Source of the DNA: Lepidodermella squamata
Lineage: Eukaryota; Animalia; Gastrotricha
Reading direction: 5' to 3'
Length of the DNA stretch: 64,000 bases
Assembly (NCBI GenBank): GCA_047495785.1
Contig: JBLDXI010000003.1
Coordinates: 1,922,001 to 1,986,000, forward strand
Position 1 is the stretch's first letter. Each line of letters starts with the position of its first letter. Positions 35,881 to 46,856 of the stretch are shown here, piece by piece. Below the pieces are notes generated by a model that saw nothing but the letters and a program-made list of their open reading frames with translations, made no database searches and had not been told where the DNA came from. The position numbers and the translations under genes are program-made.

Positions 35881-37042
35881 TGTAAGACATTTCAAAGAAA
35901 GTGGAGATTTAAGCATCAAAACAATTTCATGGTTTTCTCATGGTTTACCGGTGAATCCAAACTAATTCCAAGCCAGCTGATGATTCTATCAACATCGGGC
36001 CGAAGTTCGATAAAATCGTCGAAGCTTCACCGTTCAGCTTCGCCCCGTCAGCAAAGAGTTTTGTGATGTGTTGATCAGTGTATTAACGTCATTTTGAGGA
36101 GGCCTTGAGGAGGACACTATAGAAGTTACGTTCGACCGGGACAACGTGCTGCTATTCACGGCTACTCCACAGCGAAAAAAAACTCGGTGCTTACCGTGCC
36201 AAATAAGCTACCCAGTAATAACCAGTTTACATGTTAATCGAAAAGGGAAAAAACCTTGTGCACATACAGTCATTACCGGGTTTTGGTGTTTTACCGTGTT
36301 AAAGTCAAGACGGTTAAAACCATGCTGGAACTAACGGATTCGAAAAATACGGTATTAACCGACTAATTATCAGGCGTGCACTGGCTTTTTTTCGGGTACT
36401 AACCGATATTCAGGATGCGTTGCTACCTCATTTTTAACCAGTTTCAACCCAGTTATTCAGCTGCCTGGGTATACTAAACCGCCATATTAATGATTATTCG
36501 TATCGGCTATTCAATATTAAAAATAAACAAATGCTTAGGTCAGCACGGAAATTCACTTTATTCCAAATTCCAATTTCTCATTCGACAAGCGGGCAGGTCA
36601 AAGGTTCGTATAAAAGAGTACACATCAGTTCAGATGTTCGAACTCTAATCTTCGTAATATAAAAGAATTATCAGGATGAGCAAACAGCAGTTTATGAGAT
36701 AAACTATATCGACAGTATTTTCAATGGTGAAAAAGAGCAAAATTTGCCATCATCGAACAATGTAAGAAAAAATTTGAATTATTCAATGCCGCAATGTAAA
36801 TTCCACCATCATAATATTATACCACTGAGACTAGTCGAGTAGGGACAGCTCCGAGATCATTCGAACTTTAAAAATATGTCTCCAATCGCGCCAAGCAGAT
36901 CGAAAATGTTCGTACATTCCAAGTCTTCAAATTGTTTTACGAGAAAGAATAATAAAAAAATATATTATTTAAAACGCCATGCTTACATATGAATATAACA
37001 AAGGAATACATCGTAGGGCTGACAGGTCAGGCTCAGGGAGGA

Positions 37043-39906
37043 CTAACGTTCAAATTTAACAGGCAAATTGTCAATGATGATATAAGACTTACTATTAAAG
37101 GTGTGCACAGAAAAAGAGCGAGGAACTTCAAGGTCGGCGATTTTTATAACAGACAATGAATTATCCAAGTTGTTGATAGGCAAGCCTAGAATTTCACAAT
37201 CAAACATTTCACAATCGACAGACCTAACTAACAGACAAAAATCTTCATCGAACTTAATAATCGAAACTATAATAGCGAATTTAGGCATTTTTTGCGTCGA
37301 TGAAAACCAATGCGACGATGAATTTCCAATCATAACAGCAAGCCCACGGTAGTAGTAACCTCCACGATATGATAAAGAAGTAAAGGATTCAAAGCAATTT
37401 GGTAGATTAGGGACATTGACAGGTTCGCTAGTAACATCTTTCAGTCTAACAATTCTGGGTTTACTTGTTTCAAAGGAAGAGTCGGAATTAAAGAAATTTA
37501 GGACCTGGAATGTACAAGCATCAGCGATCTGCTTTGCGGAGTTGTTATGATTAGAGACATAATTTTTGAAGCGAGAAAGAGCTCGCTCAAATTTAAAGTT
37601 CGAATGAAATCGCAGCGGCCCGTAGTCGATAACCTGAGTGGCATAATGCACAAGATGGTGGAATTTACATTGCAGCATTCTATCCGAATCGCCATAGGCG
37701 CTAGCAACCAATTTTAAGAATGAGCTGATTAATAGTCGAAGAGTATCGACATCGTGAGTGTATAGAATCGGAGACATACAATATGCAGTGATTACAATGG
37801 AGTGAAGAAAACATTTATATTGGGATGAAGAGAAGAAGGCAGAATTTTTTAAGCGACTAATAGAATTTAAAATTAAACCGAATCGAGAAAGCAGAACTCG
37901 GCAGTGTGTTGCGCTGAGTTTGATAGAAAATACAAAACGTTTGGGCTCCGTGAATTGCACAAGAGGGCGGCCGTCCGTTTTCTCCAACATGTCCCAGGTA
38001 AACTCGTTGAAGGCACTGTTGAGCTCGCTGAGAGTCAAGCCGAAAAATCGTCCCGCAAACGCCAGAAGGTCTTCCAGTTGATACTGCAACACACCTTTTA
38101 GTAAAAATAACAAAATTAAAATAAACAATAAATAAATAGCCGCTCAAAGTTCTTACCCTCATACAAGTCGTGCATGGGGTCATTCAGTAAAAGCTGGGGA
38201 AAATTGTAGTCCGCCAACCGCGAGTCGAGAAAGACTGACTTGTGCCCAGTCAAGTTGAAATAGGAGCATCTGATGAATGAAATGATTGTCAAATAAAAAT
38301 TCTGAAATTGCTCGTTTTGCCTAACTGTTTCGATTTGTCAGCTGCGGTTTTTTGGCCCAAGATGACATTGATAGCAACGCGAATAGATTCAGCTGTCCGG
38401 AGGCCGGTCTCGACAACGTTTCGCAAGAAATCCTTCCTAGCCAGTACACATTTGCGGCATACAGAATTCGACTTACTGAAACAAGTTTGCATGCCAGCCA
38501 AATCATGCGCGGCAAGGGAATCGGCAGCGATAGCGACGAGAACGCATTGAGCTGTTCCCTGGGGCAAGTTGATGACAGTTTGGAGATCAGCAAGTAACCG
38601 CGTAATTATCACATCCAAAACTAATAAAAAATGATTAACAATTTTATTATTTCATTTCAAGTTACAGGGAAAAGCACGATGAGTGCTCGATGATCGATTA
38701 ATTTATTAATTTTTTCGAATTTTAATCAATTCAATTATTCAATTCAGTTTTTCCGAAAATTCAAATTGAAATACTTACATGCGCTTTTTTCAGCCTCGAT
38801 TGACTTGGCACTAGCTATCGCGAGCAGAAACACGTTCGAAGCAGGGTCACATTGGCCGATTTCCGCAAAGCTCCAAGAATAAATTGCATACTTGTGATTT
38901 GCGGCGAAGGGCCCAATAGGGTTCGTAAACGTCATCTCGTCGTAAAATAATACGAGAGGAACAACAAATGACGCGATGGTCAACTGAATCAACCGTTGAA
39001 CTTGCCGACCCTGAACCATTGAACGATAGACCTTGACGTTTTCGCCCATTTTTTGCAGTCTTGACTTTGTGAAATTTGCCAAGAAGTCGGCATTTTCAGC
39101 AAGAATTGCTGTCATTTGAGGAGCAACAGGCAAGTAGAACCAGGGATCAATTTCTTCCGGCTCCACATCAGCCCATTTCTGAAAATGGAAAGAAAAAATC
39201 AGTAAATCATCGAGTCGCAAGTGCATAACAGTAAGAAGCATCACCTCGAATGTAGCATGGCGGCGATAAGCAGTTCGAGTCGTGTTGAAAAGATACTGAA
39301 CATTGGATGCACTAGTTGCCTGGTTGATAATCGCCAGAAAATAGGACACCAGCCAAATCAAGAACCTACGAATAATTCCAATCCAAAAGTTTCAATTGAA
39401 CGATTATATTTAGAAACTAACGTAAGCACAAATGATATCAGAGTCTGAGAAGCATGGAATTGATATTTCATAGCGAATACAAACGTTTCAATTCGCGAAC
39501 GCATCATCACCAAGTCAGGTGCTCGGGAAGAGGCCCCGCCGGCAAGTCCCAGATCTTCAGCAGTAGAATCCTCGGCAAGTGATTCCAGATTGTTTGCATC
39601 AGAAACTTGGATATCAGGTCGCAGGTTATCCGTAATCGGATCCTCGCCAACGATTGAATCTCCGCCAACGGGTCCGACATAGTCAGGGAATTCGTGTGAC
39701 TCGGGGCCAGCAGCAACACGGCCTTGGACAGTCGAATTATCGGCCAAATCCTCGCCCAAATCGCCAATACGACTCATTTTAGAAGGAGTTTCGTCTTTGC
39801 TAGCAGCCGCGCTCTTTGCCATAGGACACTGTTTTCGATGGTCGTAGTAGAACTGAGCTTTTATCGCTTCAAACCCACACTGGCATTGCCTTTTTCTGCC
39901 ACTCAT
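37043..39906 (-). CDS. CMC/EnSpm-type DDE transposase (6 exons, ~820 aa, apparently intact)
   Basis: Motifs LFYDEMTFTNPIG...HKYAIY, ADSLAAH..AG..CF....CRKC, NDPMHDLYEG (spliced) and KFHHLVHY...YGPL.....FKFE; N-terminal C-x-C..H..C finger; all junctions GT-AG and in frame. Confidence 0.9.
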
Positions 39907-40151
39907 AATGGTTTAAGAATTAAACTAAAGAGAAAACGGAAGTTGAGGCACAGGGTATATGATTTATTATATTGATTGGATATATCGAGTCATATTTTCG
40001 TCAAGAGACTGTATACATCAAGCAAAACAAATTTGTCAAAACAAAAAGCTGAAGAGTATGAAATTCAAAGTAAGAAGAGTATGAAATTTAGGCATCTCTT
40101 GAGCATGCGATGAAATTGTTATTCATTTCAGTCATTGACTTGATTCAAACT

Positions 40152-41581
40152 TTATTCAGGCGTGGTGGGCCCACCACGACCCGAACGTGCACCACGGGCA
40201 TTCGGTTTCTTCTCCTCTTTCGACTCAGCAGGCGGCGGCGAGTGTCCTTTCACTTGCGAAGCCGATTTCGACGGTGCGGCTTTCATTCTCTTAGGCGGAG
40301 GTTTCTCTGGGGTTGTTTGTTCGTCGTCTCCAATTTCTTTGACTTGCTGAGCGGATTTCGACGCGGCAGCTGCTTTCGGTTTCTTAGACGCAGTTTTCAC
40401 CGGGGTAGCTGGTTCCTTGAATTCACCTTCTTGCTTAGCGGATTTCGACGCGGCAGCTGCATTCGGTTTCTTAGACGCAGTTTTCACCGGGGTAGCTGGT
40501 TCCTCGACTTCATCATCTTGCTTAGCGGATTTAGGCGCGGCAGCTGCATTCAGTTTCTTAGGCGCAGTTTTCACCGGGGTAGCTGGTTCCTCGACTTCAT
40601 CATCTTGCTGAGCTGATCTTGCTGAGCTTGACGCCGCTTTCGCCTGGGCAGGTCCTTTCGCTTGCATCGGGATAGCTAGTTCCTCGACTTCAACTTCTGC
40701 CGGAATGGTGTTTTCTTTTTCTTCAGCACCGAAATCAACTTTCTCTTCGTCCGATTCGTCGGCCGATTTGTCGTCACCCGTCTCACCCACATCCGAGTCG
40801 TTCCCATCAACGAAACCGTCATCATCAAAAATTTGGTTCAAGCGCGGGTCGACGTCTTCGGCATTGTCTCGCCCCGCCTGGTGTCTTCGCTCCCCTTTCT
40901 TCCTGTTGCTCATCGCCTGGGCGACGTTAGCCCGGAAAAACTTCTGAAAATAGACTGGCAAATTCTAAACCATCACCGTAGTGCGTTGCATACCTCATGA
41001 TTCATGTCGCTTGACTCAAGTACGAATAGCCAGTCATACTTGCAACGCAATTGGTCCGCAATGTAGCTATAGTCCTTCGCTGAAAATTTGCGTCCTGGAT
41101 TTTTCTTCAAGATATATGCTACCAACTGACGCCTTAAAGCCTCCCAGGTGAATCTTAAGCACTTAGCGTCCAATTCAGCCTGAACTCGCTTGTCGAAGCG
41201 CAGCTCCGAGAGGTTGAAATGCAGCGGAGTTGACTTTCCAGCCTGAAGAATGAATTCGATTACAACAACATTAGCAAACGGAATCTCTAAATACCTGATG
41301 CCTCTTGCGCTCTGCAATGAGCATTCCTTTGAAGGCAGCCTTGAAGCCCGGCTTGCCCTTGAAGACCTCAGACAGCAAATCATCCGTAACAACCGATTCA
41401 TCCAAAAGATCTTTAATGATCGTCAATCCATTTCCTAAGGAGCGATAATGACAAATGAGAGATGCAATGATATTTCAGAAACGATATACAAACCTTCCAG
41501 GATGTCGAAAATAGCTTCCTTAACATCGTCGGGCTGGTGGTAATGCCCAAAACACTTATTAAGGCGATCTCGGGCAGCCAT
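40152..41581 (-). CDS. Transposon ORF2: SAM-like N-terminus, SAMD3-like helical domain, acidic and Lys/Ala/Pro-rich tail (4 exons)
   Basis: Spliced MAARDRLNK...GLTIIKDLL..VTDDLLSEVFKGKPGFKAAF...RQLVAYIL...SAKDYSYIADQLRCKYDWL...AMSNRKK resembles the SAMD3-like second ORFs of animal EnSpm elements (recalled motif). Confidence 0.72.
40350..40612 (-). repeat. 3 x 87-bp coding tandem repeat (KQDDEVEEPATPVKTASKKPNAAAASKSA)
   Basis: Visible in both DNA and translation. Confidence 0.9.
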
Positions 41582-41702
41582 CGATTTTTGCAAATTGGAA
41601 AATCGCAAAGAACTAAGAAAAAATACAACACAGTTAAAGGTGCAGATACAATATTTCAAGTGCGCAATAAGCAAACAGAAATGCTGGCCTGAAGCTAATG
41701 TT

Positions 41703-41951
41703 TTAGGCAATCAAAACAAACTTATTTCGAAGGCGTAAACTGCGCCGAGGCTCATCCGGAAACTTAGAACAAGAACGCCGGGAGTTAAGGGATGTCGGAG
41801 CCCGAGACGAGGTACTCTGTACATGAAAATCATCAATTTCCTTTAATTCATCCGCTAACTTGTTGATTTGCATGGCAGCGAAAAAGTCAGACCGGGCTTT
41901 CAGATTATCATCTGTCCATTGAACGTAATCGAAAGTCGGTTTCTCTGACAT
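41703..41951 (-). CDS. Short transposon-internal ORF (82 aa, MSEKPTFDYVQW...), or an upstream exon of ORF2
   Basis: ATG preceded by acceptor-like AT-rich sequence; protein-like composition; no recognised domain. Confidence 0.35.
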   Translation of the reverse strand: MSEKPTFDYVQWTDDNLKARSDFFAAMQINKLADELKEIDDFHVQSTSSRAPTSLNSRRSCSKFPDEPRRSLRLRNKFVLIA

Positions 41952-42372
41952 TTGAAATGCTGTAAATAAAAAAAATCGACTAAAATAAAGGAACCTAAGA
42001 TAAGACAAAGCGGATATGAAAAAATCTGGGGATGGTTGCCTTACACAGGATACGCGCGCGATCAAACCAAAAAAGCGATCGCCACCCCTGCATAACACCG
42101 GAAGTGAGCACGCCGCGATTGAGACAAATTTGAGACAAAAATGACTTTTTTTACTTTAATAAACTAAATATATAATTTTTATTAAAATTGAACTAAAAGA
42201 AAAATGCGGTGATAATTTTTAAGCGGTAAAACACAATTTTTTTGCTTACCTCGTGCCGTCGACTTGTCGAAAAAAACGAATGTCTCGACTGTAAACAGCT
42301 ATATACAGCCACACCTCTAACAGCTTATAGATAACATCTCCTGCTTTTAATATTAATAGCCAGTCAGGTGAC

Positions 42373-43040
42373 ATGTCAAGTCAACATCCTATGAAAAGAG
42401 ACGCGGCGGTGCAATATCCTGAGATCAAGGAGCTCTGTGATGTCTTGCCATATGGCCGTTAGTAATCATGTTATTGCTGAAAGATGCGTGAAGCTAATTT
42501 TACTTTTTATGTAACGCAGACAGGCTTGTTATGGCATGCCAGAAGCAAGTGGTTGAACCGGCCTGTTCCGCCTCAGCGACAGCTGCCCAACCGTCACCCA
42601 CTCCACCTGATTCAACTGCTAAATTGTCATCTACCAGCCTTTTCTCCATTGCCAGCTCTTCGAGTGCTTTAAACAACCGCCGGAGATCGCCATCTGTCTC
42701 TGATTTCTCGATTGTTGATAGCTCATCACCTGGCCGTTACTCCGTTGCCAGCTCTTGCAATGCTAGCGGCTCAGGTGTATCGATCAAGCGGTCCAGGCGA
42801 AAGAAAACTACACCATCCCAGCGCAGAGACCTCGTCCTACCAAATGGTCATATCATTGCAGCTCAAATCGGCGTTCGACCGAAGTGCTGTCTGTGTAGAA
42901 GTAACACATATTATCGCTGTACGACTTGCGTTGGCCCTAAGAAACCCGCCATGTGCAACGGCAAATGTGCTTTTGATTATCACAATTTGGATTTCGAACG
43001 GGACTTGTTGGAATCTGGCCAAATGTCGCCTTCCTTGTAG
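42373..43040 (+). CDS. Transposon ORF3: short SAM-like segment, Ser-rich linker with NLS, C-terminal Cys/His zinc finger of piggyBac-CRD type (exons 42373-42457, 42520-43040)
   Basis: In-frame splice gives IKELCDVLPYGHRLVM; KRSRRKK; CCLCRSNTYYRCTTC..MCNGKCAFDYH matches C-x2-C-x7-C-x2-C-xn-C-x3-C-x4-H. Confidence 0.7.
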
Positions 43041-43286
43041 ATCGAAATTAGCCAAAAAATTGACATTTTGCGGTAGTTCAGACCAGCGAAATCTAGATCG
43101 TGATAATCAATAGCACATTTGTCGTTGTCATTTCAATTAGCTGCATACAGAACTGTTATTTTGTTTTCTATGTTTTTTAATGTTTGCATTGAATTTTTCA
43201 CCATTTGTACTCCAGTTAAAGTGAAGAAATTAGTTACAATTAATTTTTATTTCAATTTTAGGACATTTCAGGAAAATTAAAAGAAC

Positions 43287-43853
43287 ATGCCAAACTACGG
43301 TGATTTTGCTGCCTCTAACGCCCGGCACTGTCTCGAGCTTGCCGAAAGAGCCTCGAAGGAAATTAATGGTTGATAACGATTCATTGAGCTAAACTATTAG
43401 ACAAATTGCTATCATTACAGAGCTGGAGCGTGAGGTCGCAAAGTTCAAGTCGCGATGCAAAACCCTTGAAGAGGAGAAGATCGCTCTGCAGCGCAAAGTG
43501 GTCGTTGAAGATTTGGAAAAGGTGACATTTTAGAAAGAGTGGCAATATAGAGCCGACTACTATATGAGAACGTTCAATATTTAGTCATGGCTTTTGGCTA
43601 AATTGGAAGACGCCGGCGATGTTATCATCGATCTCACGGAAAATGTTACAGTTGAAGACAATCCATCGGTAAGTTTAATAACTATCATTGCTATTTTTAT
43701 CAATTGTACTTATGAATATTTCAGAAACGTAAGCTGCCATGGCCAGTTGTTCAATCGACAGCCCGTTGGTTCGAATCTGTTCGTCTCGGGTTCCGGGTCC
43801 CTGAATCACCCAAACAAAAGAAAATGCGCCTTCAGAAGCTCATCAACATGTGA
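43287..43853 (+). CDS. Transposon ORF4: 131-aa coiled-coil protein with SIM-like VIIDLT and basic NLS-like clusters (exons 43287-43368, 43421-43521, 43585-43668, 43725-43853)
   Basis: Four exons join in frame with canonical ~52-63 bp GT-AG introns; AATAAA at ~44063. Confidence 0.7.
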
Positions 43854-44951
43854 GCGTTGTTGATCGAAAAAAACTATTGGCGACCTACTTGGCTCATTCC
43901 GCCGGTGCCCTTTTTTTACTCGAACATTTCGTAGATTATGAAAATTTTTGCATACTTTTTGTTGTGCCTGCTGATGTGCATCAGATGATCTTAATACCCT
44001 TGATATTTACTCATTTCATGTTATACTGAATTCATACATCCGATCTTATTATCCAACTATCAAATAAAAGAGAACGACAATGCGTATTAAATTGTATTTT
44101 TTTTGACGAATTGCCCAAGCTAATAGTGTTTCATTTGCATTGGAAATAACAACTGTTTTCCGGTGAAGTCGTGGTTCAAATTTTTCGATTATTTCCTGCT
44201 GAAAGATTTGTTTACAAATTTATCGTGGGCAAAAAATAGCGATAACTAATTCTTGATTGGTTGATTTTTTTTTAATTTACTTTCGACCGTTTGGATCCGT
44301 AATAGCCGACAATTTCCACAAAGAATAAGCTGTAAGCTGATGCGAGATGACAGTTGCAGTAGCTGTCCGCATACTCGGTTACTTTTGAGTAGGTACCAGG
44401 ATAAAAACCGAGTTTTCCTATATGCCTGGTTTTTACCGTGTTGCACTCGGTCGGTAACTGCGAAAAGCAGCAAAAACTCGGTTATCATTTGGTTCCTACC
44501 GGGTTTCAATAATGCTGCAAGGTAACTTCCGTTTTTCCAACAGGGTTAAAACCGAGTTCTTTTTTACTGTGTCTGAAATAGCGATCACATAATAAACCTG
44601 TGACCTCTAATCCAGTATGCCAATTGTCCGTCAGAAAGCTTTTGGGTGATTCGAGCATCATATGACACTCGACAACAGCTAGGTTTTCGCCACCCCTCCG
44701 ACAAGAATTCGAACTAATCCTCTAATAGCAGATTGTTTCTGTGAAGGCTCTCCCAGTCAACTGTGAAGATTTTACGGAATACCGATTAAGCCAAATTTTG
44801 AATTTTTGAAAATTCCTGCCTGTGCCTGTCACACTTTTATTGCACGCGAAAAGTCTGCACGACTTCTTCTGGCCTTGAAGGAAAGGCCACTGCAATGTGT
44901 CAATACATATAGTCGTACCACGTGAATGATCGGTGAAAAGACGTTCATGTA

Positions 44952-45446: not shown

Positions 45447-46544
45447 TATTTACCGATCGATGGGATTCAACCGTCGCGAATAACCTTATCGTGTGCTGTT
45501 TATCGATTATGAAAAATGATTGTGAAACGTCGATTGGAGAAGCTTTTGTGGCGTAACCTATCCTCACTCCCCATTGTGCAAATATCAGCTGCACTCGCTG
45601 ACAATTCAAGATTAAGTTACAGCTAATTGTCGATGTTCGTCTAAATTGCAGTTATTTCTTGGTTTCTGCACTTCTTTGCCTTTTATTTGTCGAATTGGAC
45701 TTGGACTGACAAGTTGATAGTTGTTCTTCGCAAAATTCGTTGGCAATAAAATGACAGAAACAGAAGTGAGAAAGATGCTGCTGCGGTTATTTCCGAGCTG
45801 CAGAGAGGCCTGTTTCCTGAATATAGTTTGAATAGGCGGATCAAGTCACACTCTCTGCAGTGATAAATTACGGGTTATTATTGTAACCTAACGCTGGAAA
45901 AAACGATTTTCTCTACTTGCAGTGTTAATTGCTTTAAGCTTTAAGCTCTTACGACTGTAAACAATACAGCTTAGTTCTAACATGATTTTCCTGTGTCTGT
46001 ACCTGGTACGTCAAAGGGGCTGCTCTTTATGCTTTTCTTTCAAGGAGCTGTGTCTCCCTAATCTCTTCTAGCCTTTGCGCCTGATACAGCCAAAATCTGT
46101 CTGTTACCTATTTGTGAGTAGTCATTAAAGTACACGATCTGTTCCTGCAGCACGTTTCTAGCGTCTGTACATGTTACGGACAAAACCTTTGTCTGTTACT
46201 CTTTTATATCGTCTGAACCTGGTACAACCAAGGAACTGAGTCCGCTAAGTTCCAGTGTCTGTACCTGTTACAGCCAGAACCCTGTGTCTGCGGGGCTTTT
46301 CTACCGCCTGTACCTGGTACCGACATCCAAAACCCGGGTCTAACCCTCCTTTCAAGCGTCTGTACCTGGCACAGCAAAGTGGCTGTCCATTCTGCGAGCT
46401 GCGAGTCGACCACCGTTTACACTTCCTGCAACTCATGTAGCCAAGAACTGCGTCTGCATTTTGTTAATGTTGACTAGCAAATTTGCAGAGAGCATCGGTT
46501 CGAGCTTTCACAGTTACATAGGAAAGAATTCTTTGAAACTGCAA

Positions 46545-46856
46545 ATGGACACAGAAGTGATATGCCGCTACTGTGGTTTATTTTTCGACTCCATAAGTGA
46601 CTTGACGACGCACACCGATTCCGCGCATGGACCCAGTCATCAAGTGCCAGCTCATTTCTGCCTTGCCTCATCAACTCCAATAATTAATGGAGAAATTCAT
46701 TCCCGTTCAACAAACAATGGCAGTCCACAAGCTAGCGGCGACCGAGTGGTAATTGATGATTGGGGCACTGGTGGTGTTTTCTTCTTCTCGTGTTCTTTGG
46801 ATGAATCTCCGAGGTACTTCCGCGCGTCCAAGCTTGCTGACATAAAATTGGGATGA
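46545..46856 (+). pseudogene. Single C2H2 zinc-finger ORF, probably a fragment
   Basis: ICRYCGLFFDSISDLTTHTDSAH fits C-x2-C-x3-F-x5-L-x2-H-x4-H; no clean downstream exon. Confidence 0.4.

Follow-up and report, generated by a model that had tools for sequence, protein, structure and literature searches.

Little is known about what CACTA-type transposons of animals need beyond their transposase. Those described duplicate 2 bp of the target (DeMarco et al, PMC1636069), and one of them, SmTRC1 of Schistosoma mansoni, encodes PrA and PrB, fast-evolving proteins without similarity to others that its authors proposed as analogues of TnpA (PMC1636069). Accessory functions have also been described in other DNA transposons: VANDAL elements encode anti-silencing proteins, VANC, which bind noncoding repeats in the element that they come from (PMC5735166); in piggyBac, the cysteine-rich domain at the C-terminus (a cross-brace zinc finger) binds subterminal repeats in the transposon ends (PMC5861402). 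Here, a stretch of 64,000 nucleotides (the window) from the genome of the gastrotrich Lepidodermella squamata was analysed, the intergenic DNA of which harbors an element of 8,404 bp (8.4 kb) at positions 36168-44571. This element is a real, intact-looking cut-and-paste transposon of the CACTA/Mirage/Chapaev (CMC) type in an animal genome. The explanation that best accounts for it overall, to which a probability of about 70% is assigned, is an autonomous-looking CMC transposon with four genes in two divergent pairs, at least one of whose accessory proteins may be TnpA-like. Being compact, intact, and equipped with three candidate cofactor genes, the element makes a tractable case.

The element is delimited by terminal inverted repeats (TIRs), the left arm of which (36168-36198, plus strand) starts with CACAGCGAAAAAAAACTCGGT. 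Together with the right arm (44541-44571), it was recovered in an inverted-repeat search as a pair of 31 nt with 77% complementarity; at the tip, 18 of 21 positions agree, so the TIRs are imperfect. The pattern covering the first 21 nt, CACAGYRAAAAARAACTCGGT, matches only the two ends of the element within the window, in opposite orientation, with 0 matches expected by chance and none found in 100 shuffled sequences. The matched TIRs on which a preliminary description of this DNA had relied are thus well founded. They start with CACAG, in agreement with the CAC or CCC with which the TIRs of CMC elements typically begin. On the left, CTACTC precedes CACAG, and on the right, CTGTG is followed by TCTGAA, which leaves a TC on either side (36166-36167 and 44572-44573) as the two copies of a putative target-site duplication (TSD), read from the sequence.

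Arrays of short subterminal repeats are typical of the architecture of CACTA elements. In the left subterminal region (36168-36500), the motif T[AT]ACCG occurs six times within 330 nt, and the right 330 nt contain it four times, compared with 0.28 on average in the 330-nt bins of the window; the maximum in any bin elsewhere in the window is 4. All four copies on the right lie within the right subterminal region (44370-44571, including the right TIR), together with five ACCGAG motifs, a type that is clustered at this end. Because T[AT]ACCG is clustered at both ends, the element has the subterminal repeats characteristic of CMC transposons. Its TIRs, its subterminal repeats, and a compatible putative TSD all agree with CMC membership on structural grounds; the protein evidence, below curated thresholds, is suggestive.

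The transposase gene predicted on the minus strand (37043-39906) consists of six exons (39906-39422, 39365-39245, 39178-38779, 38620-38326, 38269-38157, and 38094-37043) with splice sites read from the sequence; removing the five GT-AG introns of 56, 66, 158, 56, and 62 nt restores a single frame of 821 amino acids (aa). Like those for the accessory proteins, the searches were run exon by exon. The last exon matches the Pfam family DUF4218 with an E value of 7e-5 (23 bits; gathering score, 27), and the language-model features of this exon scored 0.96 against Atlas clusters carrying DUF4218, Plavaka, and Transposase_21, which bears out the minus-strand transposase reported before. Inspection by eye revealed a CMC-like layout (D..D..CxxC..MHxxxE) with D282 (in LVLFYDE), D369 (in AIAADS), a CxxC at 390-393, and MHDLYE471, so that D282, D369, and E471 are candidate catalytic residues. 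As judged from these signatures, the protein appears to be a DDE-type transposase with a DUF4218-type C-terminus. Its codon usage is host-like (z 6.3 compared with the host genes of the window), and the GC content of its introns (0.21-0.36) is lower than that of its exons (0.40-0.49). The third intron (38621-38778, minus strand) is, at 158 nt, approximately threefold longer than the others, has a GC content of 0.23, and has no match in Rfam.

Beside the transposase, the element contains three predicted accessory genes, of which gene 1 (42531-43040, plus strand) is the only one with visible relatives in the same genome. It comprises 169 codons in a single coding exon, and the 5′ untranslated region (UTR) would be the sole possible place for introns. 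The encoded protein has a serine-rich N-terminal half, which is probably disordered, followed by a basic patch (KRSRRKK) and a C-terminal finger with eight Cys/His ligands (CCLC-x7-C-x2-C-x8-C-x3-C-x4-H). The relatives were found among the contigs of X1, the only public DNA run in which the stretch is represented: two contigs with depths of ∼178 and ∼77 match positions 42864-42994 at ∼80% identity. Of the 10 differences listed, half are at third codon positions, and only three residues change, none of them a cysteine. The unaligned contig ends continue in the same frame (QLPNGHIVKV versus VLPNGHIIAA, KSCLCR versus KCCLCR, and ELESGQ versus LLESGQ), and synonymous differences have left the motifs LPNGHI, CLCR, and LESGQ unchanged. 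Since frame, cysteines, and peptides are all kept while the changes are mostly silent, gene 1 has apparently been retained under purifying selection in relatives of the element that are diverged and multi-copy.

The finger of gene 1 resembles the piggyBac-type zinc ribbon, PF13842, and a PF13842-containing cluster was listed at 0.88 in the Atlas feature search. Membership is not claimed, as the profile did not match: the isolated 59-aa domain had no match to PF13842 in Pfam at E values up to 10. No relative of gene 1 was found in Pfam, the PDB, or, within the length limits of the word-indexed search, the protein databases. The AlphaFold model of the protein (predicted local distance difference test [pLDDT] score of 40) was too poor to be of use and produced no meaningful fold match.

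Gene A is predicted on the minus strand (40154-41951), upstream of the transposase gene, which agrees with the earlier claim of a multi-exon gene beside the latter. Five predicted exons (41951-41722, 41612-41494, 41434-41295, 41242-40994, and 40943-40154) encode 508 aa: the N-terminal region is helical, an acidic stretch (net charge of −14 over 99 residues) follows, and K/A/P repeats and an RGG tail complete the protein. The repeats stem from an 87-nt tandem repeat (40343-40617; 3.2 copies, 93% matches) that encodes a K/A/P-rich unit of 29 aa; the composition (20% A, 16% K, and 13% P) is like that of a linker-histone tail. By these features (an acidic stretch, K/A/P repeats like those of H1 tails, and the RGG tail), gene A looks like it encodes a chromatin or DNA binder, by analogy. 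Its codon usage is the strongest host-like signal in the element (z 7.9), and the predicted frame gives the highest score for every exon. Exon 1, however, lacks a clear coding signal (z 1.2) and is joined via a weak donor, GTTTGT, the same hexamer as that of the next intron; the protein may instead start at the methionine at 41581. An open reading frame (ORF) of 82 aa had been suspected in this region, and one of 81 aa is indeed present from the ATG at 41951 to the stop at 41706 (minus strand); it may represent exon 1 of gene A.

The description of gene A as SAMD3-like found no support in Pfam, the PDB, 1.84 billion proteins, or fold searches. Specifically, no SAM family matched in Pfam at E values up to 5 in the frames containing exons 2 and 3 (an intron would split the domain, the halves of which were searched separately), and the PDB sequence searches returned no match to SAM or SAMD3. 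Exon 4, when compared with 1.84 billion representative proteins using phmmer, matched only one, a repetitive protein of 3,161 aa (P0001). This match was rejected as an artefact, its score being made up of ∼30 copies of a 44-residue match with 25% identity. AlphaFold modeled exon 4 as four helices (pLDDT of 64). The model had no match in the PDB by fold (Foldseek); in the Atlas fold search, the best template-modeling score was 0.44 over 47 residues, and the first row was a linker-histone cluster. Linker_histone, the winged-helix globular domain, was not matched by Pfam in the frames of gene A. The resemblance of gene A to linker histones, in which a K/A/P tail likewise comes after the globular domain, is only a lead.

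Gene 2 (43287-43853, plus strand) is predicted to contain four exons (43287-43368, 43421-43521, 43585-43668, and 43725-43853) separated by introns of 52, 63, and 56 nt, and to encode 131 aa, of which the N-terminal half is coiled-coil-like, the middle acidic, and the tail basic. An unbiased search for spliced ORFs (GT...YAG introns of 45-70 nt) arrived at the same ATG and the same first two introns but retained the third, resulting in an alternative of 153 codons, a length reached in two of 200 shuffles. This third intron, with a GC content of 0.21, runs from a perfect GTAAGT donor to a TTTCAG acceptor. Introns (GC content of 0.21-0.35) differ from exons (0.44-0.51), and codon usage scores a z of 2.9; judging from these signals, gene 2 is probably a real gene. 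Of the two spliced plus-strand genes claimed before, both are present, but only gene 2, with its three introns, is clearly spliced, whereas gene 1 has a single coding exon. Downstream of gene 2, a segment at 43864-44146 recurs, with an identity of roughly 85-93%, in further contigs of this genome. The differences listed spare codon position 2 of an open plus-strand frame (43805-44026), but similarity extends past the stop of that frame; the segment might act in cis or form an additional exon.

Taken together, the four genes form two divergent pairs, each on one strand: gene A followed by the transposase gene (minus), and gene 1 followed by gene 2 (plus). The spacing within the pairs is 247 nt from the stop of gene A to the ATG of the transposase gene and 246 nt from the stop of gene 1 to the ATG of gene 2, and all four ATGs are preceded by a pyrimidine-tract YAG 8-25 nt upstream. 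The genes diverge, as had been noted, from a central AT-rich region (GC content of 0.37 across ∼41800-42400). Within it, the stretch 41960-42249 (minus strand), bounded by a GTAAGC donor at 42249 and a TTTACAG acceptor ending at 41960, is probably a 5′-UTR intron of gene A, or else sequence upstream of a trans-splice acceptor; the AT-rich center (41950-42370) looks to be largely this presumed intron. A putative divergent promoter with the 5′-UTRs of gene A and gene 1 was read from the adjacent ∼280 bp (42250-42530), which contain a TATATAG-like box near 42305 (minus strand). The accessory-gene introns are short, of the GT-AG type, and of the same size as those of the transposase gene. Host-like codons, the GC contrast between exons and introns, these short introns, and the retention of gene 1 make the extra ORFs gene-like, so the view that they behave as transposon-carried genes is, at the level of sequence features, partly supported. 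Rfam and tRNA scans returned nothing, and neither did a look-up of the exact proteins; feature searches in the ESM Atlas provided only weak leads for the accessory proteins.

Two parts of the coding sequence (CDS) recur in inverted orientation close to their origin, a feature absent from the preliminary description. Between the stop of the transposase gene (37043) and the only AATAAA on the minus strand (36562), that is, in the presumed 3′-UTR, lies a decayed inverted copy of part of exon 6 (36785-36937, plus strand) that mirrors 37490-37679, the core of DUF4218. RNA folding of 36760-37700 (minus strand) predicted a long-range stem of ∼190 nt (minimum free energy [MFE] of −281.5, z −10.3). The end of the gene 1 CDS (42956-42996) is likewise repeated at 43087-43127 on the minus strand (41 nt, 88%), with a predicted stem of ∼60 bp around the stop codon (MFE of −74.8, z −5.9), the stability of which was reached in none of 200 shuffles. 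Differences between the arms were considered as a sign of selection, a notion that was dropped because no codon-position bias was apparent between CDS and inverted fragment. These inverted copies may have been left behind by foldback-type repair; according to the folding models, they may also render transcripts of the element partly double-stranded.

Copy number was assessed from the contigs of X1. Sequences ∼82% identical to 44395-44556 are present at a depth of 544-618, compared with ∼47-62 for the interior and flank; as this is ∼10-fold the depth of unique sequence, the termini belong to a multi-copy family. The interior is represented by single contigs without variants (depth of 47-53), and the element itself appears to be single-copy. 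At the right flank (44600), two contigs with depths of 62 and 49.8 differ by a 7-nt indel (AAACCTC) and probably represent two haplotypes; the interior depth would fit that of a single haplotype, with the element present on one of the two. The recent activity proposed earlier would rest on the intact frames and this hint of hemizygosity; a second, near-identical copy was found neither in the contigs nor in the window, which also contains nothing further resembling the element. As to whether the ORFs are retained in other copies, the frame of gene 1 is kept in its relatives, but genes A and 2 have none at or above 80% identity in the reads. One contig joins 42547 to 43785, skipping 1,237 nt that comprise gene 1 and the greater part of gene 2; this contig may derive from a deletion or be a misplaced relative. 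In the flanking DNA on the right, at a distance of ∼1.9 kb, a 131-aa ORF (46461-46856, plus strand) contains a stretch resembling a C2H2 zinc finger (CRYCGLFF...HTDSAH). That the insertion had split a host exon was also considered: reconstruction of the empty site leaves a frame of 93 aa open across it, yet this frame has no coding signal, and the idea was rejected.

How such an element might work can be outlined. The transposase would, via D282, D369, and E471, cut at the CACAG termini, and one or more of the small, nuclear-looking proteins would, like TnpA of En/Spm or PrA of SmTRC1, bind the T[AT]ACCG subterminal repeats. The bound cofactor would help to pair the ends or regulate the promoter of the element. 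Because it combines a basic patch with a two-zinc finger, gene 1 would be the most plausible candidate for this role; that at least gene 1 has end-binding or cofactor activity is, by analogy, given roughly one chance in three. Each gene pair would be expressed from 42250-42530 as one bicistronic unit and resolved by spliced-leader trans-splicing of the host. The inverted CDS fragments would provide the transcripts with long double-stranded stems, which could feed RNA interference or dampen expression.

Several observations weigh against the explanation as an autonomous-looking transposon with a TnpA-like accessory protein. Of the TSD reported previously, the TC on both sides stands, but it is just 2 bp long, a match that arises by accident with a probability of 1 in 16, and the 3-bp flanks are unequal (CTC versus TCT). 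The DUF4218 match is under the gathering score of Pfam, and Transposase_21 was not matched by Pfam when single exons were searched. PDB sequence searches were blank, and exons 3 and 6 of the transposase had no homologue in length-limited protein searches and two metagenome scans, for which reason the transposase is regarded as a divergent member of CMC; the word-indexed protein searches cover only 0.55-1.75 times the query length, so that full-length kin could be hidden. No public RNA run covering the stretch was found, and exon boundaries, bicistronic units, and hairpin-containing 3′-UTRs are predictions. The cofactor function is pure analogy. Lastly, genes A, 1, and 2 are without homologue in the exon-wise Pfam, PDB, protein, Atlas, and fold searches, gene 1 lacks a host-like codon signal, and neither gene A nor gene 2 has a relative at a DNA identity of at least 80% in the reads of X1.

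These last three points speak for another explanation, namely that the extra ORFs are mere passengers, either fragments or whole copies of host genes (acquired by transduplication, the way Pack-type elements do) or ORFs that arose de novo and are still young, without a role in the life cycle of the element. We consider this improbable, as the diverged, multi-copy relatives maintain both the frame and the cysteines of gene 1, all three accessory genes are intact with consistent splice signals, and their layout with the transposase gene is ordered and symmetric. Moreover, no host copy of them was found in the window, nor at or above 80% identity in the reads.

Small proteins with nuclear-type features (KRSRRKK plus a zinc finger in gene 1; an acidic stretch, H1-tail-like K/A/P repeats, and RGG in gene A; a coiled coil and basic tail in gene 2) could also constitute, along the lines of the preliminary description, an anti-silencing or chromatin-control module, comparable to VANC or to the promoter reactivation by TnpA of En/Spm. 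Sequence-specific anti-silencing by proteins of transposable elements exists in plants (PMC5735166), and TnpA reactivates methylated Spm promoters (as summarized in PMC1636069). However, neither VANC nor any silencing factor shows homology to these proteins, and the same features suit an ordinary end-binding cofactor equally well, which makes such a function, proposed by analogy, distinctly unlikely. A long shot, too, is a self-contained regulatory system, in which two divergent, trans-spliced bicistronic units would supply the transposase along with three lineage-specific proteins that bind chromatin or DNA and either control the chromatin of the element or counter silencing by the host, and in which double-stranded RNA from the inverted coding ends would allow for self-tuning.

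That the element is no longer mobile, being a single-copy relic or a domesticated locus with surviving inverted ends, in which the internal inverted fragments mark past rearrangement, is very unlikely, for although it is single-copy at unique-sequence depth, with imperfect TIRs, two internal foldback-type partial duplications, and a very divergent transposase without close relatives found, none of the four frames is interrupted, both ends have kept their subterminal motif arrays, the related termini are multi-copy (the family is or was active), and the interior depth of one haplotype hints at an insertion polymorphism.

With the favored explanation, a four-gene CMC transposon, several questions arise: whether CMC elements of animals employ TnpA-like end-binding proteins, whether operon-style trans-splicing is used to express several genes, and whether self-complementary transcripts limit the activity of the element.

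Compared with known systems, the element is close to SmTRC1 and other animal CACTA/TRC elements and to the Mirage branch of CMC, with which it shares the (here putative) 2-bp target duplication, a multi-exon transposase, and extra proteins devoid of similarity. SmTRC1, however, is one transcription unit with alternative splicing, whereas here four separate ORFs occupy both strands in two divergent pairs. With maize En/Spm, which encodes the transposase TnpD and TnpA, the element has in common termini starting with CAC, subterminal repeat arrays, and a transposase and auxiliary protein on the same strand. It differs in that En/Spm has a 3-bp TSD and makes two essential products from one promoter via alternative splicing, whereas three auxiliary candidates are present here, none of which resembles TnpA in sequence. 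Like the Mutator-like VANDAL of Arabidopsis, it is a DNA transposon with extra small ORFs beside the transposase, but it belongs to another superfamily, shares no sequence similarity with VANC, and VANC acts on silencing by plant DNA methylation. Gene 1 ends in a compact motif of eight ligands (C-x2-C ... T-x-Y-x-C-x2-C ... C-x3-C-x4-H) that resembles the domain of piggyBac, but the order of the ligands differs from the C5HC2 of piggyBac, and the finger resides on a separate small protein in another superfamily. The class of accessory proteins, for which the preliminary description had suggested a possible undescribed module, has thus been described already (TnpA, and PrA and PrB of SmTRC1; PMC1636069), but the gene set has not: what is new is the combination of three orphan genes with a transposase in two divergent pairs with self-complementary 3′ regions.

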